Shown here one piece after another: positions 14,796 through 32,845 of a DNA stretch of 64,000 nucleotides. Made by a program: the position numbers and the translations under genes. The stretch's first letter is position 1, and every line of letters begins with the position of its first letter. The stretch lies in the sequence record ON287372.1; one strand, written 5' to 3'. The notes under the pieces are model-generated. The model was not told the DNA's origin and made no database searches. It was given only the letters and a program-made list of their open reading frames with translations.

Positions 14796-16616
14796 TTAGA
14801 AGTAATCGCTACGGCCATTACCGCGCATGCGGAACGCTTTACCGGCGTAACCGGAAGTTGCGTACTGGGATTGGAAACCACGACGGAAACGAGTATCCTG
14901 GTAGATACCGTCAGCCTGGGTAACCATGCCCACTTTCTCTGCGGCGTTGGTCAGCGCGAACAGCCACTGGGTGTTAATCAGTACTGGTACGCCGTGACCG
15001 GTGATGCGGTAGCTACCGCCGGTGAACTGATCGATGATCTCTTCCATTTTCGCCAGGCGAACTTCGATTGGCAGAGAAGAGTCGTTCTGGCAACGATCCC
15101 AGTCCTGAACCATACGCGGATCTTTCTTGCCGAAGGCAGTCACGATTGCGTAGTAGTCGATCTCGGTCAGAGAACGGATCTGGCCGCGGTCGTCAGTCCA
15201 GTCACCCAGCAGGATGACACGGTCTTGGCGTTCGCCGATGTCCAGAGGTTTGACGCGGTTCAGTTCCAGCTGAGCGCTGAACTCGTTATCAGTCAGGTTA
15301 TCGCCAGCGATTACCAGCATGTCCGCGTAAGTATCGCGGTTAGCGTTCATCGGGTCGGTTGCCTGCAGCAGCAGTTTCTGCTGTTGGGTGGTGATACCGG
15401 TTTCATCGATCAGGACGGTGACGAAGTTCTGATCCGGCTGAATAACAACATCAGTCAGGTCAGCCCACTCAACGTCATCCAGAACGTCTGGTACGTCTTT
15501 GAACTCTTCGTCCAGTTCGTAGGTCAGAGCGACCGGGGTACGCAGTTTGGCGTTATCGCCAGCAGGTTTCAGACCAGCGGTCAGAACGTTTTCGTTGATC
15601 AGGACAGGGATCTGAGCCAGCGCCAAGCACAGGTGCTCCGGAGAAGCTTCGTGCTTCATGTGGGTGATGACCAGATTTTTGCCGTAGATCTGACGAGCTT
15701 CGTCTTCTTCGCGCTGAGAACGGTAGCGAGAACGACGGGACTGACCGTCCGGGCGGCCCAGGTAGGTGACGTCAACGAAACCTTCGATGGTTGCGATGTC
15801 CATTGCGCCTTCAGCGTTTTCCAGTGCGTTAGAAACACGGTTACGCTGGCCTTTGGTTGCCAGGGATACTTCTACGGACAGATCGCGACGACGCGGACGC
15901 TCAGTGATTTCGTCGTGCGCATCACCTTGGTTGTAGATGACGCGAGAAACGAATTCGCTGCGCTGTGCATCGATTGCAGCGCCCAGGTTGAAGTGCTCGG
16001 TACGCAGCATGTTGCCCAGGTAGCCGAATACCGCGTTCACGGCGCTGATGATCAGATCTTCGCATTTCGCTTCGGTCAGCTGTGCGTTGGTGATTGCCAC
16101 CGCGCCCATCTGAACGATGTCGCCGGCCAGGTCAGGAGCTTTACGGCCGATGATTTCTGCCAGCTTGATCTGATACGCGTCGGTGAACTGATCGTTCGCT
16201 ACTGCGGAGTACTGACGTTCGCTACGGTTGCCGACTTCAACGGATTGCTTAGGCAGAGCCTGGCCACCGGTGAACAGCAGAGTCAGAGCGCAGGTAGTTG
16301 CGATGCCGCCGGTAACAGCTTTACCTACGACTACTGCCGCGTCCAGTTTCATTTTGGTTTCGCCGGAAGTTGCCGGGATAACCGCCCAGGTCAGTTGACC
16401 GCCAGCAGACAGGGCTGCTTTGTTCGCGTCGTGGTAAGCGTTGAAACGCTCGATGAAAGTGGTCAGCTCGTTACCAGATACGCCGGCTTGAACCAGTTGG
16501 CCGCTTTCGAAGATGTCCGTGTTCAGGCGACGCTGAGAATGCTGTTGATTACCCTTTGGTGCTGCAGCACGTGGAGAGTCTTGGGTTTCGTTAACGTTGT
16601 TGTCGGTCAAAGCCAT
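14796..16616 (-). CDS. chmA: chimallin, major phage nuclear shell protein
   Basis: 606 aa from ATG 16616 (RBS AAGGAG). It lies between the beta' gene and the DNA polymerase block, has high-expression codon bias, disordered termini and a chimallin-like LGDWTD...RSLTEIDY segment. Confidence 0.85.
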   Translation of the reverse strand: MALTDNNVNETQDSPRAAAPKGNQQHSQRRLNTDIFESGQLVQAGVSGNELTTFIERFNAYHDANKAALSAGGQLTWAVIPATSGETKMKLDAAVVVGKAVTGGIATTCALTLLFTGGQALPKQSVEVGNRSERQYSAVANDQFTDAYQIKLAEIIGRKAPDLAGDIVQMGAVAITNAQLTEAKCEDLIISAVNAVFGYLGNMLRTEHFNLGAAIDAQRSEFVSRVIYNQGDAHDEITERPRRRDLSVEVSLATKGQRNRVSNALENAEGAMDIATIEGFVDVTYLGRPDGQSRRSRYRSQREEDEARQIYGKNLVITHMKHEASPEHLCLALAQIPVLINENVLTAGLKPAGDNAKLRTPVALTYELDEEFKDVPDVLDDVEWADLTDVVIQPDQNFVTVLIDETGITTQQQKLLLQATDPMNANRDTYADMLVIAGDNLTDNEFSAQLELNRVKPLDIGERQDRVILLGDWTDDRGQIRSLTEIDYYAIVTAFGKKDPRMVQDWDRCQNDSSLPIEVRLAKMEEIIDQFTGGSYRITGHGVPVLINTQWLFALTNAAEKVGMVTQADGIYQDTRFRRGFQSQYATSGYAGKAFRMRGNGRSDYF

Positions 16617-16906: not shown

Positions 16907-18004
16907 ATGATCGAAATATTCAAAGACCTAAGGGTAGACAACATCAGGCAATACACGCCGGGTGCCATGACTCTCCTCAGGAACAATGCTCAGTCCAATC
17001 TTGTTCGTACTAAGTACTGGTACCGTAAATCTGTACACGCCGTAGAGTCAGACCATATTCTGGTTCAGGTACTCCAGCATATCTCGGCTAACTACGCTGG
17101 TAATGATGAAGACTTCTATTACCAAGTTAATAGTCAGTCAGATAAAATCATTCGTGCCCTGGGACTGAACAATGAAGTCCAGCGTTCCGGTGCCATGAGG
17201 AAGAACTCTTTCTTCCCTAAGAACGTCCGTGAGTTTATCATCTGCATCAAACGCCGCTATCCATCGAATTTGGACGTGACAGACATCTGGATGGATCTCG
17301 AGCCTATAAAGGTTATTTCCCATCCCTTTACTGATTTGACGATGCAGACTCGTAACGGAGAGGATTTCTCTGTAGGTAAAGCCGGTGCCTTCCTGGAGCT
17401 CGATATTGGACTGCTAGCGCTCCAGTATGTTAAATGGAAAGCTACGGTACAGGCATATAGCGAAGTCAAGCCTATCGTCACTCAGTTCGTTTATCAATAT
17501 CCGTTGGTGAACATGATCTCCAGTGATATCGATGTAAGCTTCTTTAACCGCTTGGCAGCAAAATGGGAAAATAAACCCATGGTCAGCCAACCCAAACGAA
17601 TTGGGTTAGCCGCCGTAGATTTGAATGGACCTGCTGATCATGTTATTGCTGAATTGACTCAGAAGCTTTCTGCTGCTAACCGGGACTTCCTGTCCCTCCC
17701 TGCGCAGATCCCATTGATCTTCTTGGACAACTTGTCACAGAAGCTCAACATTCCGGATGTGTTCTTTAACCGTCAAAACCTCGGTCTTTATACCCTTGCA
17801 TATTTCCGCTATCTAGCGTTCTTAGCTTGGGCAGGTAAAGAGACAAAGACGCAAAACAATACGCGTGTTGCTCAATACCTGGAACGACTGTACCAACGGT
17901 TAAAGAATGGTAACTACTTCTCCGGGATCGACGGAGTGGACGCTAATCGAACTCTTCAGCTACTTGAGTCCGAAGTGCTGATTCCACTTGGTCTACATCC
18001 ATAA
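16907..18004 (+). CDS. conserved jumbo-phage protein divergent from chimallin
   Basis: 365 aa, RBS GAGG, TATG late-type motif upstream. The position is conserved in phiKZ-like phages. Confidence 0.75.
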   Translation: MIEIFKDLRVDNIRQYTPGAMTLLRNNAQSNLVRTKYWYRKSVHAVESDHILVQVLQHISANYAGNDEDFYYQVNSQSDKIIRALGLNNEVQRSGAMRKNSFFPKNVREFIICIKRRYPSNLDVTDIWMDLEPIKVISHPFTDLTMQTRNGEDFSVGKAGAFLELDIGLLALQYVKWKATVQAYSEVKPIVTQFVYQYPLVNMISSDIDVSFFNRLAAKWENKPMVSQPKRIGLAAVDLNGPADHVIAELTQKLSAANRDFLSLPAQIPLIFLDNLSQKLNIPDVFFNRQNLGLYTLAYFRYLAFLAWAGKETKTQNNTRVAQYLERLYQRLKNGNYFSGIDGVDANRTLQLLESEVLIPLGLHP

Positions 18005-20171
18005 AGGCAGTGTCACGATCAATGTGGTCGAAGATGAGACGAGTCTGGTTGCTATCGAACAGATAGTAGTCCAGGCTCTCCATCACCAGATACATCGGGC
18101 TCATTGCTGAACCGATAATCTTACGTACGTCGATTGCATCCAGAATCTCTTCTGGGATGCCCATGGAGATAATGATACTCTCCGGCAACAGCAGTCGACC
18201 TACGTATCCTTTCCCTTTAGACGCTAACCATTTACGGAAGCGGTCTGCCATCTCCTGATCTTTCCATGAATTCAACCAGTTCTCTGTCTTCTTCTTGGTG
18301 TCATGCATAATGCTAAATGACAACGCAGAATACGGAGGTGGTTCGATCATCCCATATTTCGGCCCAAACACTTCTTGCCACAACTCGTAGTTAAGGTAAG
18401 GAGAGTTCTCTCCCTCGTAACCATCTTCCTCTTTTACACGAGCAGCTTTCAGGTAAGTTACTTCCCCATTACGAACTGAATCGTAAATGGAGTATTCCCA
18501 GCGAGCTATCCAGCGCAGATAACGAGAGAGATTAATCTTCTTATCGGCAGTTGCCAAGTCTGTGATTTCCTCGATGATTCTATCAAGGTCAGCACGCACC
18601 CCAGCCGGTGAGTTAGAGGCAATTAACTCCACACCTTTCTTCTCACGTTTATACTTCTTAAAGATTACCCCCTCTTGTACCGCCATGTTAGCAAAGTAGT
18701 GCTTAGCACGAGACGTAAGAGTAAAGATAGGGAACAGGTATTCGTTCTTCATTGAGAGACGGAATACTTCTTTAGGCTCTACAACACCTATGTTACCTGC
18801 CAAGCTAGCTAGGTTGTGTGTTGTGGTTTGAGATACAATGAAGCCCATAGATTCGGCTATGATGATGTTCTCATGGTTCACGCGGTTGTGGCCAGAGTAC
18901 CATTGTACCCAATCCTGTACCGTAAAGATTGCGGAGTCGGTATCTGAACCTACGCCACTACGACGGATGGAATGAGGGAAATCACAAGTCAGGAACGGAA
19001 TGTTCTTAGACATGAAGAAGACGTTGATGATTTCCTTATACTTGTCCAGCTTCTGGTAGATCTGTTTGCACGTTGTGCCCATCAGACCAAAGCCTTCACG
19101 TTGACTCACTTCCTCGTAGTCATCCCAAAGATCCTCTTCCAAGAGAATGTGTGGGAACATAACTTTCATCTGTGCGATGGTGTCATCATCTACGTGTTTC
19201 AACCACGCTTCATGATCAGGGTCGATCTCAGTAGCTGGAGTAACCAGACCAGAAATGAAGTCACGTACTAACGGTTCGTTGTATTTACGTAGGTGGTAAA
19301 GGTCGCCAGTATAAACAATACCAGCACGCTCTATATCTGTACAGCCCTCTACGTACTTACGAATTGTACGGTGAGCTGGTGAGTTAGGGTTACCGCGACC
19401 CCAATAAAGGTCACTGCCCCAACGGATAACTTCCATAACTTCATCCACTGTCGGGATATGGAGGTTATGTTTCACTACCGCCTCTTCCACTTCGTCCCAA
19501 TTACTCAGGCTGAGGATACTACTGATGTTGTTCATGACAACTTCAGGTTTCCAGTAGTGACGGTTACCGGACAACAGACGATCGTCATTGGAGTTAGCAC
19601 TACCGTTAGCAATACGACAGCATGAGGTCAACACAGGGTGAGTACTGCGGTCATGTAACGGGCTGTGCTCAGAACGGTGGTTACCTGAGATGGCGTTGTT
19701 CAGGATCTTTTTGTTGTTCTGGTTGTTCTTGTGGAACGTAGCTTTAAATCCGTTACCTTTACGCTCGGCTTCAAACATCAAGTGTTTCTCAGCGGAACGT
19801 TTACTCAAGTTTCCCTTGATGTATTCCGAAAGCAAAGATTGTTTAATGTGCGGAGGTAGCACGGTAGTGAAAGTCGGCGCCAACAACCAGCCGTTAGTTG
19901 TTACGGTTTCGATGTATTTCGTGAAAGGTACGGCACGAGGTTTTTGATCCAGCTCGTCATCGCGTTCCAGGAGTAAGAAATCCGGGTCTTTCATCTTGTT
20001 TGGGCCGTTGAACAACTCTTCACGTACAAAGGCCTCACACTGCTCCATAGGCATACCAGTGGACTTATGAAGCATTAATGTATTCTGTTCGATGTATCCA
20101 GTGATAACATCGATGTTGCGTTTGTAATGGGACGCCGGACGGTTAAACGGGTTATTGATATCAGCGGACAT
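17943..20171 (-). CDS. family B DNA polymerase, polymerase-domain subunit (phiKZ gp50-like)
   Basis: 742 aa with motif B KKILNNAISG, motif C GSDTDS, RAKHY and KGVE. No exonuclease motifs or DxxSLYP were seen, consistent with the split polymerase of this group. Confidence 0.88.
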   Translation of the reverse strand: MSADINNPFNRPASHYKRNIDVITGYIEQNTLMLHKSTGMPMEQCEAFVREELFNGPNKMKDPDFLLLERDDELDQKPRAVPFTKYIETVTTNGWLLAPTFTTVLPPHIKQSLLSEYIKGNLSKRSAEKHLMFEAERKGNGFKATFHKNNQNNKKILNNAISGNHRSEHSPLHDRSTHPVLTSCCRIANGSANSNDDRLLSGNRHYWKPEVVMNNISSILSLSNWDEVEEAVVKHNLHIPTVDEVMEVIRWGSDLYWGRGNPNSPAHRTIRKYVEGCTDIERAGIVYTGDLYHLRKYNEPLVRDFISGLVTPATEIDPDHEAWLKHVDDDTIAQMKVMFPHILLEEDLWDDYEEVSQREGFGLMGTTCKQIYQKLDKYKEIINVFFMSKNIPFLTCDFPHSIRRSGVGSDTDSAIFTVQDWVQWYSGHNRVNHENIIIAESMGFIVSQTTTHNLASLAGNIGVVEPKEVFRLSMKNEYLFPIFTLTSRAKHYFANMAVQEGVIFKKYKREKKGVELIASNSPAGVRADLDRIIEEITDLATADKKINLSRYLRWIARWEYSIYDSVRNGEVTYLKAARVKEEDGYEGENSPYLNYELWQEVFGPKYGMIEPPPYSALSFSIMHDTKKKTENWLNSWKDQEMADRFRKWLASKGKGYVGRLLLPESIIISMGIPEEILDAIDVRKIIGSAMSPMYLVMESLDYYLFDSNQTRLIFDHIDRDTAFMDVDQVESALRTQVAEEFD

Positions 20172-20289
20172 GATAATCCCTTTTCTCTTTTTAAACTTTC
20201 ATCTATACCATCGTAACACGACGTAAAAAGAAAAAAGAACAGCAGATAATAAACCTCCTCCTACCCGTTAAGGTAGGAGGAGGGATATG

Positions 20290-20718
20290 TCAGCGTTGAG
20301 TAATCTCGAAATTACTGAACCCGGCTGCAGAAAGTGCTAAGCGAACTTTCTCTTGATCTTCCGGTGCAGTATTCGGGATAGTCACGTAGGTATTGACCAC
20401 CTCAATGACTTTGATCGTTTCGACTTTGATCCACGGCAAACCGATAACCGTTTCGTCGCCATTCTCTAACGTAATGACAAGCCATTTATAGCCGGCCGGG
20501 TCATTCGGCGCCTGACCAGTTGGGAGCATGTTGTAAACTTTAGCATGCTCTGCAGCTGCGTCAATGTTGAAGCGCGGGGTATTTTTGAATGAGATCAAAT
20601 CCGTTGGTACGCAGTTACGGAAGATATCTCCGTAAAGTGCTACCGGGTAAATCTGGAAGGTTACGCGATCACCCAGGTTAAACTTACCCAAGATGTTTTT
20701 GCCACCTGTATCGGCCAT
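20290..20718 (-). CDS. conserved hypothetical protein
   Basis: Likely start ATG 20718 (MADTGG, RBS GGAG, TGATG overlap); 142 aa. Confidence 0.7.
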   Translation of the reverse strand: MADTGGKNILGKFNLGDRVTFQIYPVALYGDIFRNCVPTDLISFKNTPRFNIDAAAEHAKVYNMLPTGQAPNDPAGYKWLVITLENGDETVIGLPWIKVETIKVIEVVNTYVTIPNTAPEDQEKVRLALSAAGFSNFEITQR

Positions 20719-21092
20719 CAGCTTTTTCTCCATTTGAGAGTAATTAAGAGCTCGCAAGAATTCATAACATCTAGACTCACGAAATCAAAATCTCCATCAA
20801 GTAAACTAAGATGGGCATCAGAGACTACGAGAGTTCTAAAGAAGTTAATGACCGGTAGGCTGGATTCGACTAACCAATCGAAACACGGGCTCTCCCCAGG
20901 TTCCAGAGAAAGGAATTCTACATACCGAGATTCGATTGCTCGGATAGCTTCATCCCTTACGAAAATGGGATCGATCTCAGTATCAACCCCAGCTTCTTGG
21001 TTTTCATTCTTAATGCGTTCAGTTATAGCGTCTACGTATTCCCCAATTACGACGGGGAGATATACGCTGCTCAGGTAGGTTTTTAGAATCAT
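20718..21092 (-). CDS. small acidic protein, array member 10
   Basis: 124 aa with a C-terminal beta-hairpin (LDVMNSCELLITLKW). Confidence 0.65.
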   Translation of the reverse strand: MILKTYLSSVYLPVVIGEYVDAITERIKNENQEAGVDTEIDPIFVRDEAIRAIESRYVEFLSLEPGESPCFDWLVESSLPVINFFRTLVVSDAHLSLLDGDFDFVSLDVMNSCELLITLKWRKS

Positions 21093-21468
21093 TTATCAGG
21101 TATCTCATCGCTATGGATTTAGTCAACCCGAGTATGGTGAAGTTATCAATGAAGGAAGCGTCTTTAATCACTTCCATACATTGCCGCATCAGAACTTGAG
21201 TCAGCTCATTCCTAAGTAGTTCTCGCTGCTCCTCGATAACTTCCAGGGCAGCTTCCATTTTATCTTTGGTGTCAGTGAAAATATACTGCCGCATACTGCT
21301 TTGCGATGACCCGCCGCTCAAGATGTCCTCTAAGATGCAATGAGTAATCCCTTCGCGACTGACGTATACCGTGTCTTCAATAGACTCCACAACGCTACAT
21401 AAGTTATCGAGAGCTCTCAGGTAGTCGGCAACGCAGACCACAACGATCCTTGCTGTTCTACTCACCAA
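21019..21468 (-). CDS. small acidic protein, array member 9
   Basis: 149 aa with an N-terminal strand RIVVVCVAD. Confidence 0.65.
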   Translation of the reverse strand: MVSRTARIVVVCVADYLRALDNLCSVVESIEDTVYVSREGITHCILEDILSGGSSQSSMRQYIFTDTKDKMEAALEVIEEQRELLRNELTQVLMRQCMEVIKDASFIDNFTILGLTKSIAMRYLINDSKNLPEQRISPRRNWGIRRRYN

Positions 21469-21902
21469 ACCTCCCGATCGTAATCAATGAACTGAACACT
21501 GAACGTATGGCCGCGAACGAATGCCCTGGAGATCTGAATCTTATCCAGAGGGATCCTTGTTCTATTTACAGCCGACTCTATCTCGCTATCTAAATTACGA
21601 GCGAAATCAGAAATGATCGTCATGTAAACTTGGACATCGCGTTCAATATTCTCGTATAGATAATCAGGGGAGTCCTGATTAAGTTCGTTATACCCGAACA
21701 GATCTTCCAGGCTATCTTGCAAGTTATCGAATGCGCTTCCATTCGGATGGATGTAGTAATCCAAAGACAGTTGCGCTGATAACTTTAACAAGTCCTCTAT
21801 GGTTATCTCCGGAGCATGGTGCTGGACGAAATACCGCATCGAGGTTACGTCCCAGCCCTTTATCTCGAATAATACATTAGAGGTAAAGTTACGATTAATC
21901 AT
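21462..21902 (-). CDS. small acidic protein, array member 8
   Basis: 146 aa with a C-terminal hairpin ISRAFVRGHTFSVQF. Confidence 0.65.
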   Translation of the reverse strand: MINRNFTSNVLFEIKGWDVTSMRYFVQHHAPEITIEDLLKLSAQLSLDYYIHPNGSAFDNLQDSLEDLFGYNELNQDSPDYLYENIERDVQVYMTIISDFARNLDSEIESAVNRTRIPLDKIQISRAFVRGHTFSVQFIDYDREVW

Positions 21903-22306
21903 GATTTCTCCAATGTCAATCTGAAGTACGACTGACTGAAGTCAATTGTTGATACGGAATACTCTCCTACCAAACCCCTGGACAGGATAGCATTAGCATA
22001 GAACTTTTGGAACAGGCCGTAAAAATTTAAGGCATCTGCCATCCAGTTGTTCATATCCCAGTTATCTTTACTGAAGTGGGGGTTGCGGATAATCCCGATG
22101 ATGTCGGAGAGTTCCTTCAATATCTCTTTAGGGGGAGTGGATGCAGTAATGGAATTAACCGCTCCCTCGATAAGTAACTTAGGTGCTCCAATTACTCCCC
22201 AGTCCTTACTGAGACTAGTAAAGAGGTCGTGAACTTCCCCTCTGTACTCGAGAAACAGTATGATTCTCTTTGAAAGCCTCCCAGGCCGGTTTCTTAAATC
22301 TGACAT
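21899..22306 (-). CDS. small protein, array member 7
   Basis: 135 aa, RBS AGGA, C-terminal STIDFSQSYFRLTLEK. Confidence 0.65.
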   Translation of the reverse strand: MSDLRNRPGRLSKRIILFLEYRGEVHDLFTSLSKDWGVIGAPKLLIEGAVNSITASTPPKEILKELSDIIGIIRNPHFSKDNWDMNNWMADALNFYGLFQKFYANAILSRGLVGEYSVSTIDFSQSYFRLTLEKS

Positions 22307-22790
22307 AGAGAGTTCCTAAGGTTAGATCGACTTCGAACATTATATCTTCTATAGAATCAATAACGCCGAAGTAATCCGTCGTTCGACTCCCCAATCGCTT
22401 AGACATGTTTTGTATCAGTAAATAGACGTGAGCTCGGTGCTTTTCATAATCACTTTCCTCACGTAAATTAGCTTTGGTCGCAGAGCGTTCTACTAATACC
22501 TCAAGTTCATTGACGATTTGGAAGCGTAAACGCATGTCAAATATCGAGGTCCCATCCGATTTAATTTCATAGGTCATGGCATAGAGGAAAGCAACACGAA
22601 CACAATCTGTCACGGAGAGTCCGTAAGGACTCGCCATGACTTTGAATAGATTGAGCAGGTTCGAGATGTCAACAATATGCACTGACCGATAACGTTCTTG
22701 TTTTGAAGTCAAGGTGCCAGTTTCCTTCGAAAAGATGTGAAGATAGCCCGGTATAGTTAACGATCTGAGTTTTAAAATAACTACGTACAT
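22215..22790 (-). CDS. small protein, array member 6
   Basis: Up to 191 aa; the true start is probably an internal TTG near 22693. It contains SVHIVDIS and EVDLTLGTLYVRFK. Confidence 0.6.
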   Translation of the reverse strand: MYVVILKLRSLTIPGYLHIFSKETGTLTSKQERYRSVHIVDISNLLNLFKVMASPYGLSVTDCVRVAFLYAMTYEIKSDGTSIFDMRLRFQIVNELEVLVERSATKANLREESDYEKHRAHVYLLIQNMSKRLGSRTTDYFGVIDSIEDIMFEVDLTLGTLYVRFKKPAWEAFKENHTVSRVQRGSSRPLY

Positions 22791-23016
22791 CTGCTACGAT
22801 GCACTCGAACGTCATGTGGTCAATCCCGAACATCCCGAGATCATCTGCAAGCTCGTCCATACGCTCCTCAAAGAGCGCAGGTTCCATCGTATTCGCCAAC
22901 AGATACTTGAGATGCACCTCTACGTTTAGGGAGTTCTTAGCCTCTGGATCGACTTCATCCAAAAGGCGTGTGTACTTAGCCCGTAAAGTTTCAATTGGTA
23001 TCAACCATGTTTTCAT
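22669..23016 (-). CDS. small acidic protein, array member 5
   Basis: 115 aa: MKTWLIPIE...WHLDFKTRTLSVSAY. Confidence 0.65.
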   Translation of the reverse strand: MKTWLIPIETLRAKYTRLLDEVDPEAKNSLNVEVHLKYLLANTMEPALFEERMDELADDLGMFGIDHMTFECIVADVRSYFKTQIVNYTGLSSHLFEGNWHLDFKTRTLSVSAYC

Positions 23017-23019
23017 ACC

Positions 23020-23499
23020 TTACCCATTTCGTTTATGGTAGTCGTATATCCGGTAGTCCCCGTGGCTACGTAAAAGGAATGTGGTCGGAGTTGATTTCTC
23101 GTACTCGAGATATTCCCAACTCAAGTCTAACCCGATTGAGGTAAGTACAGTACGAACCCTTACCTCAAACATGTCAACTACCTCGCGGAAGAATTCCCCA
23201 GACATCTCATCAGTTGCCTGTTCCTCGCCGTAGTCATCTATAAAGACGCCCTCAGGATCGTAGTCAACGAACCAACGACGTATCTCTTCGATGTCATCCC
23301 AATACTCAGGAGAACCAAACCGCCGCTCCTTCTGAATAATGTTCCAGATGATGCGCGCCGTGGTTTCCTGTAATTCATTAAGGGTGATGGCAGGGTTGAT
23401 TCGATCTTTAAACTCCGGGAATTGACGGATGTAAGTCCTTATTGAATTCAGTAAGAACCCAGTTAACCCATAGCTGTCCACGACAACAAGCTTACCCAT
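23020..23499 (-). CDS. small acidic protein, array member 4
   Basis: 159 aa: MGKLVVVDS...YEKSTPTTFLLRSHG. Confidence 0.7.
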   Translation of the reverse strand: MGKLVVVDSYGLTGFLLNSIRTYIRQFPEFKDRINPAITLNELQETTARIIWNIIQKERRFGSPEYWDDIEEIRRWFVDYDPEGVFIDDYGEEQATDEMSGEFFREVVDMFEVRVRTVLTSIGLDLSWEYLEYEKSTPTTFLLRSHGDYRIYDYHKRNG

Positions 23500-23508
23500 T
23501 GTAACCCT

Positions 23509-23925
23509 CTATTCCATAACTGAGATGTCGTAGTAATGAAGTAACACGGTATCGATAGACACCGTAGGATCGTGATAGTCTCGGGTAACAGAACTCATGA
23601 GCTTACCCATGCTTCCGATAGCCGATTCAATTAAGTGAATACCTACAGGGTCGACGAACATTTCATTTAAGAATGCCATCTCTACTTCCCGCTTATCCAG
23701 GTAGTCACCTAACTCATCATCTTCCTCTTCGTAAACCTCAACATGATCGTTGTAATAATGTTCGCTAAAAGAACACAGCCGACTAGAATGGGAATCGTAA
23801 AGCCCAGTCCAGATCGCCGTGTTAACCATCGAATACAAGAACCTATATTTGAACTCTAGGTCAGGTAGTCGTTTTAATATCCCGTGTACTGCTGCTGGGT
23901 AGTCGAGCCTGAATACTCTTTCCAT
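23509..23925 (-). CDS. small acidic protein, array member 3
   Basis: 138 aa starting MERVFRLDY, RBS GGAG. Confidence 0.65.
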   Translation of the reverse strand: MERVFRLDYPAAVHGILKRLPDLEFKYRFLYSMVNTAIWTGLYDSHSSRLCSFSEHYYNDHVEVYEEEDDELGDYLDKREVEMAFLNEMFVDPVGIHLIESAIGSMGKLMSSVTRDYHDPTVSIDTVLLHYYDISVME

Positions 23926-24245
23926 GATTTACTCCAAGGAATAGCATCTGGATTACGGTCGTAAAACTCATCGTTATCTACGTACAATGCAAGTCTGCCA
24001 TACGCAGCCAATTTAACCTCCGTTACCTCTAGGAGATTGTAGATCGGTTCGAATCGCCACAGCCGCCTAACTACCTCAGCTAACTTTCTGTTAGCATTGT
24101 CCGGATATACCGGGTTGGTTATTAAGATATTGTTGTCTTTCGTAATGCAATAGCTGAAGATTTCAATTAAGTCCTCTTGACTCAGTTCTGGGTCAATTTT
24201 GGTTGCGATAGATATCATGGAGTTGATATCGTAAAGGATAATCAT
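23874..24245 (-). CDS. small acidic protein, array member 2
   Basis: 123 aa: MIILYDIN...VKLAAYGRLALYVD. Confidence 0.65.
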   Translation of the reverse strand: MIILYDINSMISIATKIDPELSQEDLIEIFSYCITKDNNILITNPVYPDNANRKLAEVVRRLWRFEPIYNLLEVTEVKLAAYGRLALYVDNDEFYDRNPDAIPWSKSWKEYSGSTTQQQYTGY

Positions 24246-24634
24246 AACCGCTCCATTAAGGAAAGTCTGAATTCCCTTCTGTTGAAGGTGATATCTCCAA
24301 TCAGTAAATGATCGTAACTGGAGAACTGCTCTAAGAAATATTCGGTCAGTATATCTTCATGATTACAGACGTTATCGAATATCTCAAAGAGCATCGTATC
24401 GTAGTCTACCGAATTCCTGCCCGGTAATACATGCGCTACTCGTGGTAGTACATCCTTACCCTCCTTAATCACCCAGGAGTACAACTGTTCTGCCCAACCG
24501 TAGTCTCCTGTCCCCCACCACGCAGAAAGCGTGAGTTGGAAGAGAACATTCTCGCTGACTAAGTAAGGGTAAGGTCTAGTGATCGATAACATGAACAAAG
24601 GAACATTACCAATCACTAAAGTTTCTCTAGCCAT
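24242..24634 (-). CDS. small acidic protein, array member 1
   Basis: 130 aa: MARETLVIGNVPLF...ITFNRREFRLSLME. It is the first gene after an early-promoter motif. Confidence 0.7.
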   Translation of the reverse strand: MARETLVIGNVPLFMLSITRPYPYLVSENVLFQLTLSAWWGTGDYGWAEQLYSWVIKEGKDVLPRVAHVLPGRNSVDYDTMLFEIFDNVCNHEDILTEYFLEQFSSYDHLLIGDITFNRREFRLSLMERL

Positions 24635-24757
24635 AATTGTTCCTGTAATCCACCAGATTCAATTTAGAGCCAAATGTACAGTATCTTCCTTCATTATAAG
24701 TGAAAGCGCCGTACAATTTGATACAGTAAGTTTTAGGGTTATTTCCCTTACATGTTA

Positions 24758-24774
24758 GTAATATAGTTCTGAAA
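24758..24774 (-). promoter_or_regulatory. early promoter upstream of the ten-gene array
   Basis: TTTCAGAACTATATTAC. Confidence 0.72.
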
Positions 24775-24789
24775 TCATTTCGATAAAAT

Positions 24790-25110
24790 AACAAAACATA
24801 TCCCTCCCCGACGACCGTTTTAAGGTCGCCGAGGGGGAATGCTACGGAAGGAAGACGCTACAGCGTTCAATCGTTCAACGTTTGTTTGCAGATCTATAGT
24901 GCGGTATATCTTGTTTATGGCCGAATATCAATAGTCAGCCGTATCACGGAACTTAATCCGCCGGGGGTTGGTCTTCTTCAGACCTTTTCCAAATTGTTAA
25001 ACTAAGCGGGGTTTTAATCCCGCTCAGAGTTTTATCCGAATCCAAGCGCAGGGTTAGCTGCCGAAGATCAAGATTGAACTGCTTTGAAAACCAATGGATG
25101 TTTTCTACAT
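24790..25110 (-). ncRNA. candidate structured non-coding RNA downstream of phuZ
   Basis: About 320 nt with no RBS-led ORF and at least six hairpins. It has a TATGTA motif at the 5' end and a long GC stem plus U-tract at the 3' end. Confidence 0.4.
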
Positions 25111-25114
25111 ATAA

Positions 25115-26077
25115 TTAGGAGAAAAACATTCCGTCGTCTTCGGACTGGTTGTTGTTCTTCATTACTGAAGAGGTCAGCTTTTCGCGAGACGCTTTACGAC
25201 GATCGTAATCTTCACGAATTGTTTTCAATTCGCCCATCAGGCTATCCAGACCATGGGTATAGATAGAGAAGTAGATCGAACCTTTACCGGCTTCAACGCG
25301 GTTACCGTAGGCGTTGTAATCGGCAGGGATAGTACCTTCGCTACGGTAGTCGTCACCGTGCAGTTCAGCTACAGAGATCGGAGATTCGATTTCCAGAGCT
25401 TCATTACGGTCTTCAGTGATGTCCAGCAGGCAGAGCTGAGGATTCACTTTAGCGCCAGCGCTAGGGCGTGCCCAGTTCAGTACGTCTGCGCTATCCAGGC
25501 CGTGGTGAGTACCGGAATACAGATCCAGAACCCAACGCATGCCCATCAGCATGTTGAGATCAACTTCGGCGTTACGTACGTTGTTACCATTGGTATCGTA
25601 GTACATGACGCTGGATACGTTTTGCTTACGTGCCATGGAATCGATCGAGTAGATCGTGTCCAGGGTGTTGCCGGTGGTTTTGCCGCTCTCAGTAGAGCCG
25701 ACCACGAACATCAGTACCGCTTTGTTTTGCGCCCACAGCGCTTCTGCAATCTTCAGTGCGAACACTGAGCCGGTACCGCCGGAGGCAGAGAACACCAGGA
25801 TGTTCAGATCGGATGGTTTGTGTGACAGCAGAACGTCGTCTACTGCACGGGCGATCAGCGGATAGTTAACGGAACGCTCTTTACCCGAACCGTCTACGCC
25901 TTCCAGAACATAACAGGTCTTCGGATCGTAGCGGCCGTTGAAGTTGGATTTACTGCTGTCAACAAAGGCAGCATTAACGTATGCCAGACCGCTCAGGTCT
26001 TGTCCCAGGAGGCGGTTTACCAGATCGATACCAGCACCGCCACAACCGTAGATAGATACGCTATTACGAGTTTGCAT
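25115..26077 (-). CDS. phuZ: phage tubulin PhuZ
   Basis: 320 aa with GCGGAG, DGSGKER and the tubulin signature SASGGTGS. Confidence 0.93.
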   Translation of the reverse strand: MQTRNSVSIYGCGGAGIDLVNRLLGQDLSGLAYVNAAFVDSSKSNFNGRYDPKTCYVLEGVDGSGKERSVNYPLIARAVDDVLLSHKPSDLNILVFSASGGTGSVFALKIAEALWAQNKAVLMFVVGSTESGKTTGNTLDTIYSIDSMARKQNVSSVMYYDTNGNNVRNAEVDLNMLMGMRWVLDLYSGTHHGLDSADVLNWARPSAGAKVNPQLCLLDITEDRNEALEIESPISVAELHGDDYRSEGTIPADYNAYGNRVEAGKGSIYFSIYTHGLDSLMGELKTIREDYDRRKASREKLTSSVMKNNNQSEDDGMFFS

Positions 26078-27057: not shown

Positions 27058-27864
27058 TTAGTGGACAACTCTAACAAAGTGCTCTTCAGGAATTTCGAAG
27101 TCGTACTCCATTCCACTCGGATCGGTCAAAGTGGCCGGGAGATAACCTTCTTCCATATCGCCGATATCGGCAGTCGAAAGCTTAACTGTTCCCGTTGCGA
27201 AGGTATAATCACTTATCCCCTGGCACTGGGTAATCCAAATCATGCACGTAATACAGTTCATGACTTCTTCGTCATCGCGACGATGGTACCCGTAAAGGTT
27301 GTAGATGAAGTTCTGCTGAGTGCTCAGGTCGTAGATAGTTACGATAACGTCACCATCTTTAACCGGATGATCTTCATCGACTACGTGTACACAGATCTTC
27401 TCGTTGTTCGCTTTATCGAGGAGATTCATTTCATGGCGATCTACACGATGAATGGAGAAATCTAATTCCTCATCATCGGCCAGGATTTGATAGTCAGCCA
27501 CACAGCCATCTTCATCCAATTGAGGTATGGCAACTATGGATCCGTACTCGTAACGGTAGATGTCATCGATCAGACTGACTTTATTAACCTGGAACACGCC
27601 CAATACACGCCAGTCTGTAGACTTACGTGAACCCGCATTCATTAACGCTTTAATAATTTTCTCAACGTCAGCCGTTTCATTAAACGGTATTTCCAATCCC
27701 AGGGGTACTGATAGCAAGATAGGGCAGGTAGTCCCTTCTGCATACAGATCAATTAACAGGGAGCCCGGTGTAACCATTTCAGGCGTGAACGATAGCATGA
27801 GAGTCATAGCCGGTTTAGTATCTTCCGCAGTGGACTCAGGTACAGCTGATGTAACTTGTTCCAT
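27058..27864 (-). CDS. hypothetical acidic protein
   Basis: Likely start ATG 27864 (MEQVTS, RBS AGGAG); 268 aa. Confidence 0.7.
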   Translation of the reverse strand: MEQVTSAVPESTAEDTKPAMTLMLSFTPEMVTPGSLLIDLYAEGTTCPILLSVPLGLEIPFNETADVEKIIKALMNAGSRKSTDWRVLGVFQVNKVSLIDDIYRYEYGSIVAIPQLDEDGCVADYQILADDEELDFSIHRVDRHEMNLLDKANNEKICVHVVDEDHPVKDGDVIVTIYDLSTQQNFIYNLYGYHRRDDEEVMNCITCMIWITQCQGISDYTFATGTVKLSTADIGDMEEGYLPATLTDPSGMEYDFEIPEEHFVRVVH

Positions 27865-27943
27865 GGGCACTCCTGACAAAAAGAAAAAAGCGATAACAGA
27901 AAGAAAAACCTCTGCACACAAAGTGTGCAGAGGCTATCATTTT

Positions 27944-28402
27944 TTACTCTTCAGGCTCTGGTGTTTGGAATGTAAAATACTTAATGAACTCTACGAGTCC
28001 TTCTTTCGATGCCTCAGACAGACCTACTTTGCTCAGAGTCTCGTTAAAGATCTCAGTGACCTCACCATCCCACGTACTGATGAAGCTACTATTAAGAACA
28101 AAGTGGTTAATCTCGTTGTAAACCGAATAGGAAGGTTTACCCCAGAATACGCCTCGGAACATCAAATTGTAATGGCTCTTCAGATCTTCTTCGATCAGAT
28201 TCAGCATAGGACGAATGGGTAATTTACGTCCTGCCTGAGTGCGGGTAATACGATAGACTTGCAATCCGTCCTTAGTACCTACTATCAAGCAATGGCGAGC
28301 TACCGATGAACGACGCGCAATGTTCAACACCACGTCGTTGTTATCGTCGATCACTGAAACGTTCTGAACAATACCTTCAGAAAGTTTAACGGTGACTTTC
28401 AT
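27944..28402 (-). CDS. hypothetical protein
   Basis: 152 aa, RBS GGAG, 4-nt overlap with the upstream gene. Confidence 0.65.
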   Translation of the reverse strand: MKVTVKLSEGIVQNVSVIDDNNDVVLNIARRSSVARHCLIVGTKDGLQVYRITRTQAGRKLPIRPMLNLIEEDLKSHYNLMFRGVFWGKPSYSVYNEINHFVLNSSFISTWDGEVTEIFNETLSKVGLSEASKEGLVEFIKYFTFQTPEPEE

Positions 28403-28758
28403 CCACGTCTCCCTTTACAAACCGTATAACAGTAATAGCTATACCCTGTCTCGGAGCTTGTTGATATTTTGAAGTCTCCACTCGTTGTGGCGCTAATACG
28501 ACCGCAACGATAACAGCGACAAAGCGTTTGGGATTTAGGCGCAAATGCACCTAAGAGTTCTTTATTTTTTACACTTCGTTTTTCGAGTGCTTCGGTACGA
28601 CAGGTTTCCTTTACCTCAGCAGCAGGCTTAATAGCTTTGATTACCGGCTTCACTTTTTGGAAGCAGTTGCAACCATTACATTCAGCATGCTCCTGGCCGT
28701 CGCGAATGAATTGAGACAAATCGAAGGTTACGTTACAGATCACACATTGTTTGCGCAT
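28399..28758 (-). CDS. zinc-finger protein
   Basis: 119 aa with CVIC, CNGCNC, CYRC and CYTVC clusters; RBS GAGGAG. Confidence 0.7.
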   Translation of the reverse strand: MRKQCVICNVTFDLSQFIRDGQEHAECNGCNCFQKVKPVIKAIKPAAEVKETCRTEALEKRSVKNKELLGAFAPKSQTLCRCYRCGRISATTSGDFKISTSSETGYSYYCYTVCKGRRG

Positions 28759-28829
28759 GGAGATATACTCCTCAAAATAAAGGGTGTTTTGGTGCAGGAG
28801 GAATTCCCCCTACACCGTACGAGTAGCGA

Positions 28830-29429
28830 TTAAACTTGATTCCAGGTGTTTTGCATCAGGTCACTAATTGTAGACTTAACACGGTCATTGTAGACCCCTG
28901 GTGGGTTAATCAGGTTGGCAATCGTAATGCCGGTTTGCGGGAGCTTAGCCAACAACTGTAAGAGCTTAGCATCGGTAACCCCTTCTTCCGGAACGTTGAT
29001 GTCCAGTTTAACCCAATCGCCGAAGTCTTTCGATTCTTTTTCAACGAACCAATCGAGATCAGCATCAAACCCATCGAGTTTAAAACAGTAACGCCGCTTA
29101 TGATAAACGCGCTCACCAAATGGTAAAGCGAGTTCGTATTCTTCTTCACTGACTTGGAACTCACGCTCCAAACAACGAGAAGTCATGTCGCCGGATTTAC
29201 CTGGGAAGCGATATTTGGTAGCGCACTCAAAAAGAACACCTGAGGATACGCTAGCCTCTACAGCTTCTGTACGACGTACGCGGTTAGTCAGACGTAAGCC
29301 TGTATCCGCAGTAGTCTGTATCTCCGACTGAGTGATGATGAGATAGTTTTGAGTTTCCAACAGAACCTGCCGAGTTTCGGGAGTAATCTGAAAGAAAAAC
29401 GCTACCTCATTCTCATTACTTTTAGCCAT
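28830..29429 (-). CDS. CYTH-like (triphosphate tunnel metalloenzyme) protein
   Basis: 199 aa with an N-terminal ENE, then ITQ, RVRR, TKYR, LEREF, KRRY and DLDWF, the usual CYTH strand pattern. Confidence 0.6.
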   Translation of the reverse strand: MAKSNENEVAFFFQITPETRQVLLETQNYLIITQSEIQTTADTGLRLTNRVRRTEAVEASVSSGVLFECATKYRFPGKSGDMTSRCLEREFQVSEEEYELALPFGERVYHKRRYCFKLDGFDADLDWFVEKESKDFGDWVKLDINVPEEGVTDAKLLQLLAKLPQTGITIANLINPPGVYNDRVKSTISDLMQNTWNQV

Positions 29430-29519
29430 GAGAATTCTCTCTTAGTTGATTAACTTCGAATCCTTTACGGAAAGAATCCGGTACATACACTACGACGTAG
29501 AGATTATTTTTTACGTCAC

Positions 29520-30098
29520 TTAGTTAAGGAATATCTTTTTGAATTCTGAACGCATACAGCCAACAGGGTAGATTAAGTCAGCGCATTTGACAAAGAAATC
29601 GCTGAGTTCTGTACCCTTATGGATAACGCCATAATCTTCTTTAGTATCCGAGAATGATAACCACCAATCTTCATCTTCATCGAATTGGCGCAGTAAAGGA
29701 TGATCGTGGATATAACGCAGGCCTTCGATGTAACATGTATCGAAGTGCAGACTATCTTCCAAGATGAAGGTATGAAGGAATAGGGAATCGCTGAAGTCTT
29801 CATTTGGTACTTTAAGATCCTTCCTAACTACTTTATACCCGTAAACATCCTGCATATAGGCAGTAACGAATAATGCACAGGGTAGGCAAATGCCGCGTAA
29901 AGGATCAATGTCGAAGAGATCTACGTGATCGGTGATGTTAATCAGCGCAGCCGTATGGATGTGCTCTTCTGGCAAGTCGGTTTCAAATTGGTGGAATAGG
30001 GCAATACCGCCATGATCACTAATGACTCGAGACGGCTCCACTTCAGTACGGTATGTTTCATGTATGGTACGGAAAGCGTGTTTAATTGAATCTTTCAT
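29520..30098 (-). CDS. hypothetical protein, possible Cys-His-Asp (transglutaminase/papain-like) fold
   Basis: 192 aa with GICLPCALF...LHTFI...FDT spacing typical of such a triad. Confidence 0.5.
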   Translation of the reverse strand: MKDSIKHAFRTIHETYRTEVEPSRVISDHGGIALFHQFETDLPEEHIHTAALINITDHVDLFDIDPLRGICLPCALFVTAYMQDVYGYKVVRKDLKVPNEDFSDSLFLHTFILEDSLHFDTCYIEGLRYIHDHPLLRQFDEDEDWWLSFSDTKEDYGVIHKGTELSDFFVKCADLIYPVGCMRSEFKKIFLN

Positions 30099-30159
30099 GA
30101 TTACTCCGATATACGGGTATAAAACGCCTAGGGAATTCCCTAGGCGAGTATGACGTTAT

Positions 30160-30768
30160 TTAGGCGTTGATGTCACGTAAAACAGCGTTGACTTCATTAC
30201 GCATAGCTTGAGCCAATTCTTGGTAGTTGTAAGGATAACCACCTTCGGGTATGATCCGGGTAAAGGTGACCGTCTTAGTTGGTCGGAAGTGACCTTCACC
30301 AAAGTCGAATGTTGCACTCAGCTTTTGAAAGACCTGATACTTGGAGTTAGTGCTAAGTTCGAAACGCACTACTCTAATAGCAAAGTCATCAGTGGCCACT
30401 TGGATCAATTTAGCAACTTCTTTCGCCACGTGGGGGATATTCAGGCGACCCTCATTGGAAATGATCAGGCGTTTGAAGGTATCGAGATAAACTTCCCCGA
30501 CTATGTGAGTAGTGCTGATTGTACGAAGGGCGTCTGCAATAGCAGAGGGAACCGTTTTCTTCCAGTAGTTAGCACCACCGAAGTTTTCGTAGTAATGCAG
30601 GATATAAGCCCGCTCGAGTACGAAGGTCAGCGGCAGTTTCACTGAAGTGAAGGAAACTTGCACAGCGCCATCGATACGAATGACATAGTGGTGACGACCA
30701 ACATCCACGCTGCGTGATTCAACGTTTACTGAGCCGGAGTTAAATACCTGGATATAATCAGTTTTCAT
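30160..30768 (-). CDS. hypothetical protein
   Basis: 202-aa ORF with RBS, in the accessory operon. Confidence 0.65.
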   Translation of the reverse strand: MKTDYIQVFNSGSVNVESRSVDVGRHHYVIRIDGAVQVSFTSVKLPLTFVLERAYILHYYENFGGANYWKKTVPSAIADALRTISTTHIVGEVYLDTFKRLIISNEGRLNIPHVAKEVAKLIQVATDDFAIRVVRFELSTNSKYQVFQKLSATFDFGEGHFRPTKTVTFTRIIPEGGYPYNYQELAQAMRNEVNAVLRDINA

Positions 30769-30774
30769 TTTCAG

Positions 30775-31299
30775 TTATCCTTTTGCACGAGACATGTTTT
30801 GTTTAAGTTCACGAGGATTGAATGCCGACGCGAATACGTCGAACATCAATGCATCATAAAGCGTTGCTCGGTTAGTCGGGTTGAGGTAAGGTACCGGACG
30901 ACCTGCGGCCTCTACGATAGCCTTGAAAAGGTCATCATCGTAGGTTGGTTTATAATCCAGTTCGATCACCGAAGCGTTCTTGCCGCAGAAGCTTTGTACG
31001 AATTTAGGGAATTCTTTATCTTCTTCGACGTAATACGGGAGGTCGGAATAAATGACCATCTTTGGCGGGACGCCATGTTTCTGAACATGCTGCCACACTT
31101 TGTACAGCTCACTACCTTCGATAGTCTTTTGATGCTCTTTAGGGAGCTTCTTATCTACCGCAGAGTTATAAACCTGAATGCCCCGTACGTTGAAACGGAA
31201 CTCTCCTTTGACGATATTAGCCGTAACAATAACGCCATCTTCTTTCTTGGAGACACGTTCAATCAAACCGCATGGATAAGTCAGGGAATACTGAATCAT
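30775..31299 (-). CDS. hypothetical protein
   Basis: 174-aa ORF with RBS AGGA. Confidence 0.65.
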   Translation of the reverse strand: MIQYSLTYPCGLIERVSKKEDGVIVTANIVKGEFRFNVRGIQVYNSAVDKKLPKEHQKTIEGSELYKVWQHVQKHGVPPKMVIYSDLPYYVEEDKEFPKFVQSFCGKNASVIELDYKPTYDDDLFKAIVEAAGRPVPYLNPTNRATLYDALMFDVFASAFNPRELKQNMSRAKG

Positions 31300-31409
31300 T
31301 TCTTTTTCCTTGTTTTAACAAAATAGTGAATAGAACCCTTTCCTTCTAGAACACCTAGAAGGAAAGGGGGTTTACTCTCGCCATGGTTACTTCGTCATTC
31401 CCGGAACGC

Positions 31410-32078
31410 TTAAGTTGCGTCAGCTAAGTTTAGGGGGAGTTGATGTTTGTAGGCCAACAGAACGACTTCGCTGCGATAAGCCTGTCGATGACTGTTAACT
31501 TTCTGATGAACGTATTGCTTGAAACCGGCTACAGTACGAGCACGCCCTTTATCGTAAAAGAACGCTTTATTGCTTCGTGCAGCTCCAGGCGCTACGGAAG
31601 ATGCGTAACGGTTATTACGCGCTTTGAGGATCTTGGCTGCGTCTCCAGGCCCGAGTAGGTGTGCCATGTAGATTTCTTCAATGCCGACTTTACGGTGAAG
31701 TTGCGACTCAAGATATCGTTGATTTTCCTTGATGTATTCCGCAGCCATCAAAGCGTTGGCTCGCGGGTTTTGTTTACTGGTACCAGGTTTGATACCGTAC
31801 TGTTTACCGTAGCGTTTAACCATTACCCGCCACGTACGATCGGTAAAACCAAACAACCCAGCAGCAGAGCTGGAACGGTTATGTCGGTTTTGACCCATAG
31901 TTGATTCGATGCTGGCCAAGATGACCAGATCCATCATGTTTACGTCCGCACGTTTGGACGTAGAGAGCAAGACGGTTTTGTGCTTATTCCAACCGGCCTG
32001 GTTCACGGATACAGATGCGGTTGCTGGGAAACTGAATGTTACCAAGCAAAGGACAAGAGTCCAGAATACCATGCGCAT
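31410..32078 (-). CDS. SLT-family lytic transglycosylase with N-terminal signal peptide
   Basis: 222 aa with catalytic IES and AAGLFGF...TW, IYMAHLLG. The hydrophobic N-terminus ends in PATA|SV. Confidence 0.8.
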   Translation of the reverse strand: MRMVFWTLVLCLVTFSFPATASVSVNQAGWNKHKTVLLSTSKRADVNMMDLVILASIESTMGQNRHNRSSSAAGLFGFTDRTWRVMVKRYGKQYGIKPGTSKQNPRANALMAAEYIKENQRYLESQLHRKVGIEEIYMAHLLGPGDAAKILKARNNRYASSVAPGAARSNKAFFYDKGRARTVAGFKQYVHQKVNSHRQAYRSEVVLLAYKHQLPLNLADAT

Positions 32079-32197
32079 GTTCGTTTTTCCTCAAGTAGTC
32101 GTTGATAACGATTACCTTGGCGAGAGGAGAGTGTTACCACTTCGCGTTAATACCTCCTGTACAAAAAGAGGGAGTGAACTCCCTCATTTCAGTTAAA

Positions 32198-32845
32198 TTA
32201 GTGAGTGGTCGGTTTTTCCATGGATGGGAAAACGTACGACACGCGGGCTGAGGTTGGGTTAGACATCGCCATCTCAGCGTCGACGAATGTAACAGCTACA
32301 CCGCTGTTATCTTCAGTACGGCTGACGCTGGCCGCTGGAGCACCAATACTCAGTTGTGCCAGAGTGATACTGAATGCATACAAAGCTTCGGAAGGATTCA
32401 GTGGACGACGCTGCGCCGGCTGAGTCAGGTTGGTGGAAGAGGTATAGATCACGCCCTGGTTATTTACCCACCAGGCCAATGTGGTACGCTCGTTACCTTC
32501 CAGCAGCGCAGTGATAGTGCGGTTTGCACTGACCATGATAGAGACACGGAAAGTTTCAGGGAAGGTCGCCAACAGTTCGAACAGTTCCCAGGACAGGTTA
32601 GGGTAATGTTCTTTAGCCGCTTCGTCCAACTCTTCAATCGAGTTAGCGCAGCCGAATTGAGCCATCGGGTTTTGGAACACGACCGGATCTTTGGTGAAGC
32701 CAAAGGATGGGTTGAAGGTTTCCATGTCCGGACGCTGGGTGCCGCTTGGATCTACAACATCGATATCAACCACACGGAGAATCTGCTCTTCTACAACGAG
32801 CTTACCCATGTTCAGGATCTGAGTTGCTTTACGAGTATCGGACAT
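32198..32845 (-). CDS. hypothetical protein
   Basis: 215 aa, RBS AAGGA, high-expression-type codon use. Confidence 0.7.
   Translation of the reverse strand: MSDTRKATQILNMGKLVVEEQILRVVDIDVVDPSGTQRPDMETFNPSFGFTKDPVVFQNPMAQFGCANSIEELDEAAKEHYPNLSWELFELLATFPETFRVSIMVSANRTITALLEGNERTTLAWWVNNQGVIYTSSTNLTQPAQRRPLNPSEALYAFSITLAQLSIGAPAASVSRTEDNSGVAVTFVDAEMAMSNPTSARVSYVFPSMEKPTTH

Follow-up and report, generated by a model that had tools for sequence, protein, structure and literature searches.

An array of small, highly divergent genes between PhuZ and DNA polymerase in Serratia phage Totoro, and its possible relation to nuclear import factors

Serratia phage vB_SmaS-Totoro (sequence record ON287372.1), a member of the genus Moabitevirus, is a nucleus-forming jumbo phage. 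We call it so because the locus analyzed here, a 64,000-nucleotide (nt) stretch of its DNA that is referred to below as the window, carries genes for the PhuZ tubulin, a divergent family B DNA polymerase, chimallin, and a homolog of the core import factor Imp1/PicA. An array of ten small genes, designated A to J from position 24634 down to 20718, stands between PhuZ and the polymerase and is followed by an eleventh gene, K (Table 1). The original prediction, made from the DNA letters alone, had described the ten as one expanded, fast-evolving family, possibly of cargo-specific adaptors for nuclear import or of anti-defense binders on a common scaffold. In this study, we analyzed the coding status and transcription signals of these genes, their counterparts in other phages, and the predicted structures of two of their products.

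Gene content and transcription of the array

The ten contiguous minus-strand open reading frames (ORFs) of the original prediction, 115-191 amino acids (aa) long, were all recovered where it had placed them, and all ten are real coding genes under purifying selection. This follows from the ratio of nonsynonymous to synonymous substitution rates (dN/dS) relative to phage Moabite, which is 0.11-0.22 wherever dS could be estimated (i.e., where synonymous sites were unsaturated). Moabite is, together with 2050HW, Yaphecito, and others, among the nearest relatives of Totoro (~74% DNA identity, bases 20200-24800 compared). The products of A-J are 46-77% identical to their Moabite counterparts at the protein level, and the neighboring genes evolve more slowly (89% aa identity for PhuZ and 87% for K). 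The array proteins are usually acidic, with isoelectric points (pI) of 4.3-5.9 in eight of the ten; F and G are basic.

Genes G and J carry no annotation in the Totoro GenBank record, and the Moabite record annotates both. The Moabite record also lists a 59-aa gene on the plus strand (6547-6726), opposite the counterpart of Totoro E (window 22669-23016). This call is probably wrong, because E is conserved in phage PhiEaH1 and matches a protein family found in 18 loci.

The motif TATATTAC, which stands upstream of gene A, occurs seven times in the window (at 1726, 6860, 24758, 39743, 51882, 51985, and 58578) compared with 2.0 copies expected, and none of 100 shuffles reached seven. The seven copies have common flanks, TGATTTCA-like upstream and CTTAATG-like downstream, and both Moabite and 2050HW carry the motif at the same place upstream of the array. 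No second copy was found inside the array. To judge from these DNA patterns, TATATTAC is likely the phage's own promoter class. A literature search with the motif string returned nothing relevant; the motif presumably resembles the early promoter consensus of phiKZ. The single early promoter predicted at 24758 was found as a single, presumably early motif at 24758-24765.

Successive genes from A to K overlap by 1, 4, 4, 4, 44, 52, 74, and 92 nt or are separated by gaps of 3 and 9 nt. Because of the promoter motif, the terminators, and the coupled junctions, A-K form one tightly packed transcription unit that runs from the promoter motif to a strong terminator. The unit had been thought to consist of ten genes. 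It has eleven, since K shares one base with the stop codon of J and the strong terminator (20254-20283) comes after K. Transcription would probably start from the promoter motif and yield a single message, whose genes would be translated in a coupled manner.

The long overlaps are out of frame and are located near 23874-23925 (52 nt) and at 22669-22712 (44 nt), 22215-22306 (92 nt), and 21019-21092 (74 nt). In three cases (B, F, and I as the upstream genes), the protein tail encoded within the overlap is situated past the putative C-terminal hairpin, and the PhiEaH1 ortholog of F terminates immediately after the hairpin.

Gene K was considered as a member of the array family and rejected, as its product is an SH3-fold homolog of a baseplate protein. 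It matches Pfam family PF20287 (SH3DP; 6e-38, 129.6 bits vs. a cut-off of 25), whose title is "SH3 fold domain associated with phage DNA polymerases", and chain M of PDB entry 9xqs (PHIKZ049; 2.7e-15). K alone matches SH3DP; no Pfam match to this family was found in any of A-J. In the 2026 phiKZ virion atlas (PMC13250141), phiKZ gp49 is a baseplate ring protein. Since K lies outside the family, the lower boundary originally drawn at J was right. The position of K also means that an apparently early unit ends with a baseplate gene, the translation of which appears to be coupled to that of the preceding genes.

Table 1. Genes and signals at the Totoro locus, with positions in the window
Feature	Position	Strand	Remarks
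Gene A	24242-24634	-	130 aa, pI 4.7; dN/dS 0.17; orthologs in Moabitevirus and Klebsiella Centimanus group
Gene B	23874-24245	-	123 aa, pI 4.6; dN/dS 0.15; orthologs in Moabitevirus and Centimanus group
Gene C	23509-23925	-	138 aa; fastest-evolving, 46% identity to Moabite
Gene D	23020-23499	-	159 aa; homolog of phiKZ gp43; AlphaFold-modeled
Gene E	22669-23016	-	115 aa; ortholog of D-adjacent family (hhalign)
Gene F	22215-22712	-	165 aa from annotated TTG start; longest ORF starts at 22790
Gene G	21899-22306	-	135 aa; dN/dS 0.13; Moabitevirus only
Gene H	21462-21902	-	146 aa; AlphaFold-modeled
Gene I	21019-21468	-	148-149 aa; annotated GTG start at 21465
Gene J	20718-21092	-	124 aa; dN/dS 0.165
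Gene K	20290-20718	-	142 aa; SH3-fold protein, homolog of phiKZ gp49
Promoter-like phage motif TATATTAC	24758-24765	-	After upstream hairpin; sole copy in array
Terminator-like hairpin, U-rich tail	24792-24846	-	Between PhuZ and array; RNA fold -31.7 kcal/mol, z -4.57, 0 of 200 shuffles as stable
Intrinsic terminator-like hairpin closing unit	20254-20283	-	13-pair stem, 8 G-C pairs, then T-run; after K
PhuZ tubulin	25115-26077	-	Upstream anchor of slot
Divergent family B DNA polymerase	17943-20171	-	Pfam PF20286, 1e-238; downstream anchor of slot
Chimallin (nuclear shell protein)	14796-16616	-	32% identity, E-value 2e-26, to PhiEaH1 nuclear shell protein
Homolog of core import factor Imp1/PicA	3781-5274	-	tblastn match to PhiPA3 gene 063, E-value 5e-18, 92% coverage

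An ordered slot between PhuZ and polymerase

We collected 81 syntenic loci and grouped the 721 ORFs located between PhuZ and polymerase into 285 families. In 67 of the 81 loci, PhuZ is followed by small genes and then by the polymerase gene, which is on the same strand as PhuZ and 1.5-8 kilobases downstream. Only two proteins of this slot are widely conserved, i.e., the D-like protein and the K-like protein (gp49 homolog, 63 loci). D is a homolog of phiKZ gp43: it matches the hidden Markov model (HMM) of the family with an E-value of 6e-27, phiKZ gp43 is taken in at 3e-9, and in iterated HMM searches the family was present as a single copy at each of 54 loci, invariably preceding the gp49-like gene. 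The phiKZ protein is longer (357 aa vs. 159 aa), and D matches part of it only.

The D-like gene always precedes the K-like gene (55 loci), and in 43 of these 55 loci five or six ORFs lie between them. These intervening ORFs have no detectable sequence in common across lineages, and 176 of the 285 slot families are singletons. When profiles of Totoro were compared with those of the Klebsiella Centimanus group, the co-linear family ranked first for E, F, and H and second for I and J among 284 families. The ordered slot, the steady number of ORFs, and the positional orthology argue for vertical inheritance with extreme divergence rather than shuffling of unrelated genes, and these sequence comparisons point to an ancient slot with a preserved order.

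A family of tandem paralogs is also found in the slot. It consists of 66 proteins from 29 loci (e.g., in Xanthomonas phage LucasX), a locus having as many as four copies side by side, and is always situated between the D-like and K-like genes. Its profile matches that of the family preceding D-like genes with a probability of 80.6% and that of the family directly following them with a probability of 51%, compared with reversed controls of at most 3.3% in both cases; the region aligned among these linked families comprises the N-terminal strand and the following helices, a feature noted in the original prediction. The tandem paralogs resemble the Totoro proteins in location, size, and the succession of an N-terminal strand and helices. 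They differ in sequence, as Totoro F reaches a profile probability of only 21%, H of 7-9%, and the others give nothing.

The clearest profile link concerns E. It matches the D-adjacent family, which is present in 18 loci, with an hhalign probability of 90.7% (E-value 1.2e-6, 102 of 115 columns; reversed control 0.1%). E is thus assigned to this family by a match over most of its length and by its position directly after D.

Predicted folds of D and H

Neither Pfam nor PHROGs contained a match for any of A-J. Word-indexed searches of large databases with G, D, and H returned genus-level relatives only, and a full HMM search with the H alignment found its own cluster only (a single cluster at 50% identity out of 1.84 billion representatives). 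When single sequences were compared with three wider families, D alone was significant, and F and H were marginal. Sequence searches of PDB with phiKZ gp43, gp47, and gp48 gave no useful match. As billions of proteins include no relative of H or G from beyond the genus, the matter will be decided by structure and not by sequence. The same genus-only results left thin alignments for structure prediction, and the AlphaFold models of D and H were built from very shallow alignments of three and two sequences, respectively.

The D model (predicted local distance difference test, pLDDT, 78.3; predicted template modeling score, pTM, 0.73) contains a strand at residues 3-8, helices at 9-26 and 40-57, a poorly predicted insert, a long helix at 96-121, and a C-terminal part with a hairpin (129-135 and 140-148) and a short helix. 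The H model (pLDDT 82.9, pTM 0.78) has a strand at residues 6-12, helices at 19-29, 35-51, and 56-68, a long helix at 80-114, and a hairpin at 122-130 and 133-140. The order of elements is identical in the two models, i.e., an N-terminal strand, a helical core, and a C-terminal hairpin. In the models, the strand and the hairpin probably form one small sheet, and the helices form a bundle. Both models are independently supported by superposition on library models of orthologs: H on that of PhiEaH1 with a template modeling (TM) score of 0.79-0.81 at 15% identity, and D on that of a Klebsiella ortholog with a TM-score of 0.74.

This order of elements agrees with the architecture that the original prediction saw repeated in the array. 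A hydrophobic N-terminal segment is indeed more pronounced in A-J than in a control set of 25 ORFs from the window (Mann-Whitney p = 0.003, post hoc). For the C-terminal hairpin, which the prediction ascribed to most of the ten, a crude hairpin score for A-J was not significantly above controls (p = 0.09).

Foldseek searches of a library of a few hundred thousand models placed 15 targets in the top-50 lists of both D and H. Named targets came from nucleus-forming jumbo phages in 25 of 30 cases for D and in 24 of 26 for H, and the exceptions all had low probability. Several of these targets lie in the corresponding arrays of other phages. Among the PhiEaH1 proteins, assigned by exact look-up, the D model matched gp031, the ortholog of D (E-value 3.6e-6), and gp026, in the position of J (probability 0.84). 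The H model matched gp028, the ortholog of H (E-value 1.8e-7; the D model also matched it, with a probability of 0.54), gp029 (W8CZK8), the ortholog of F (probability 1.00, TM-scores 0.53/0.55), and gp027, in the position of I (0.54). Eowyn gp082, likewise found by exact look-up and encoded in the array, was matched by H (0.90), and PhiPA3 gp039, named in the library and a gp43 homolog, by D (0.99). Three array proteins of 201phi2-1, gp78, gp79, and gp80, which were mapped by identical lengths and consecutive accessions, were matched by both models (0.33-0.80). Three further targets, of 147, 129, and 122 aa, agree in length with LucasX proteins and were left without a gene assignment. The viral library was silent on A, B, C, G, I, and J, whose Moabitevirus orthologs were not among the targets.

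One fold family, observed only in nucleus-forming phages, includes at least four of the array proteins, namely D, E, F, and H. D and H are placed in it because of their common element order and their 15 common targets, E because of its profile match to the D-adjacent family, and F because its PhiEaH1 ortholog gp029 is matched by the H model. The predicted expanded family is thus supported for these four, and tandem paralogs of up to four copies per locus occur in other phages; the remaining six are known by their sequence pattern only, and common descent of all ten is what we infer. One Foldseek target, a 114-aa protein of phage Ea35-70, has a length that matches no gene in the PhuZ-polymerase array of that phage, so the fold may occur outside the array too.

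The structural results also bear on the proposal that the array encodes DNA replication accessory factors working with the adjacent divergent polymerase, a reading that we consider highly improbable. The array adjoins the polymerase gene in 67 loci, a possible role as polymerase subunit was put forward for the unit's last gene by Iyer et al. 2021, and the Moabite ortholog of D bears a weak "thymidylate kinase-like" label. A strong terminator, however, separates the unit from the polymerase gene, and the supposed polymerase partner, phiKZ gp49, is the baseplate protein mentioned above. The fold of H had no match in PDB (best E-value 0.38), to any replication protein or otherwise, and D has neither a P-loop nor a Pfam match. 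A thymidylate kinase identity of D was rejected for lack of a Walker A/P-loop and of any Pfam match and because its model does not point to a kinase. The label on the Moabite ortholog (6814-7293) stems from an HHpred probability of 61.

Relation to nuclear import factors

In phiKZ, Imp2 (orf47) and Imp4 (orf48) are cargo-specific nuclear import factors (Imp paper). Imp2 was defined genetically, is needed for the import of one cargo, and is itself imported through Imp1; cargo recognition in this phage involves surface residues of folded proteins and distinct Imp1 interfaces. The same paper names PhiPA3 gp63 as an Imp1 homolog. The statement in the original prediction that import factors are encoded just upstream of the phiKZ polymerase gene was correct, as Imp2 and Imp4 lie upstream of gp49 and gp50. 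More precisely, their genes are located between gp43 and gp49, directly before the polymerase gp50, in the slot that is occupied by E to J in Totoro. Besides this slot, Imp2 and Imp4 have in common with the array proteins a similar size (178 and 127 aa vs. 115-165 aa in Totoro), and a homolog of their partner Imp1/PicA is present in Totoro.

Structural comparisons provide further hints. For D as well as for H, the Foldseek list includes Imp2 homologs of three phages (PhiPA3, 201phi2-1, and a phiKZ-like phage), with probabilities of 0.25-0.84 and TM-scores of only 0.21-0.40. These are PhiPA3 gp044, named in the library (D 0.57, H 0.25), 201phi2-1 gp79 (D 0.33, H 0.80), and a 178-aa protein of phage SL2 (D 0.51, H 0.84). 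For the Imp4 family, the single structural hint is the match of 201phi2-1 gp80 to the H model (0.41). Comparison with the phiKZ slot genes by profile, as had been suggested, linked D to gp43 and gave no match to gp47 or gp48; for every Totoro family against the Imp2 family (phiKZ gp47), hhalign probabilities were 0.05-0.58%, i.e., no homology was found. Given the lack of a profile link and the TM-scores of 0.21-0.40, membership of the array proteins in the Imp2/Imp4 family is not established. A mode of action like that of Imp2 and Imp4 is nevertheless the best-supported guess, given the location and size of the array proteins, the structural hints, and the fact that Totoro encodes Imp1/PicA.

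We favor, tentatively and as a possible rather than a probable reading, the view that the ten genes are part of a PhuZ-polymerase cassette found across nucleus-forming phages, some members of which are cargo adaptors for Imp1/PicA. An import role for the Totoro proteins is plausible by analogy with phiKZ, and the adaptor job appears the most likely one because the phiKZ slot holds Imp2 and Imp4 and Totoro encodes Imp1/PicA. The family would have multiplied by tandem duplication and then diverged too fast for sequence similarity to survive, with gene order and number kept. Its products, small alpha/beta proteins that are acidic in most cases, would have one scaffold in common and surfaces that diverged freely. 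The role of at least some of them may be to bind a specific cargo protein and hand it to Imp1/PicA, through which it would enter the nucleus. Each adaptor would pair one cargo with one Imp1 interface, which would lead to fast co-evolution with its partners while the number of adaptors is kept. Such a set is expected to co-evolve fast and stay constant in number, and this fits the observations.

Several results weigh against the adaptor view. All-vs-all BLASTP of the eleven proteins A-K gave nothing significant, and profile-profile scores among the Totoro families never exceeded those of reversed-sequence controls, so the "barely visible" pairwise identity of the original prediction proved to be none. 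In single-sequence comparisons with the three wider families, the scores of A, B, C, E, G, I, and J did not surpass those of controls. D-like proteins are linked only weakly to the D-adjacent family (17% profile probability; one HMM hit with an E-value of 0.009), and D and E are therefore not treated as paralogs proven by sequence. Structural models cover two of the ten proteins, D and H, whose likeness is one of element order, and TM-scores across families are mostly 0.34-0.55, or 0.21-0.40 for Imp2 homologs. Profiles of Imp2 and Imp4 yielded nothing above reversed controls against any array family, and both factors were published as confined to Pseudomonas phages. Finally, the promoter class was deduced from its motif alone.

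On such grounds the ten could be regarded as unrelated orphans in a variable hot spot, with an architecture that is simply the common look of small alpha/beta proteins. The lack of pairwise or profile similarity among them, the abundance of singleton families in the slot (176 of 285), the hairpin score not significantly above that of controls, and the six proteins to which the structural evidence does not extend would all be expected then. We judge this quite improbable, as D and H have 15 of 50 Foldseek targets in common that are confined to one phage family, and E matches the profile of the D-adjacent family with a probability of 90.7%. Tandem paralogs in 29 loci, the near-constant ORF count between the D-like and K-like anchors, and positional orthology across genera also speak against independent origins.

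A rather unlikely alternative, which shares the idea of a common scaffold, is that the array encodes early host-takeover or anti-defense binders, i.e., acidic proteins that each neutralize a different host protein and have diverged in an arms race. It would account for the promoter motif that the genes follow, for the acidity of eight of the ten, for their divergence from Moabite (46-77% identity vs. 89% for PhuZ and 87% for K), and for the isolation of H and G among billions of proteins. An absence from Pfam and PHROGs is likewise usual for such proteins (PADLOC was not searched). However, phages of Serratia, Klebsiella, Erwinia, Xanthomonas, and Pseudomonas have all retained the order and number of the genes, as would be expected of an internal function of the phage more than of accessories specific to a host. 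The dN/dS values of 0.11-0.22 reflect constraint and not positive selection. In addition, both characterized phiKZ slot genes, imp2 and imp4, act in import, and neither tolerates disruptive transposon insertions. Multi-copy families of another kind are also known from jumbo phages, such as the phiKZ head proteins (gp92-97, 153, 162, and 163; PF12699). In contrast to the array proteins, these are virion proteins and have kept sequence similarity, whereas the array follows a presumed early motif.

The adaptor reading can be extended to the whole PhuZ-polymerase slot in every nucleus-forming phage, which would then encode one ancient, hyper-divergent family of Imp1/PicA cargo adaptors, five to ten per phage, with Imp2 and Imp4 as its members in Pseudomonas phages. 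We consider this broad form unlikely. How a protein shell with no known pore selects the proteins that enter is an open question for the phage nucleus, and Imp2 and Imp4, the known cargo-specific factors, were previously regarded as a specialty of Pseudomonas phages. Should the small proteins at syntenic loci of other nucleus-forming phages be structural relatives of Imp2 and Imp4, adaptor-based selectivity would be family-wide, and candidate adaptors could be read from any such genome. A single adaptor family would amount to a viral counterpart of the adaptor repertoire of import receptors. Whatever their function, these genes keep position, number, and fold while sequence similarity is lost, a behavior that may be useful in annotating the "dark matter" of jumbo phages.

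No paper describing the PhuZ-polymerase slot as a family was found in the literature, and the array genes are not mentioned in the RAY core-genome paper. A second series of small genes, located on the same strand (minus) as the array, lies upstream of PhuZ at window positions 27058-34280.

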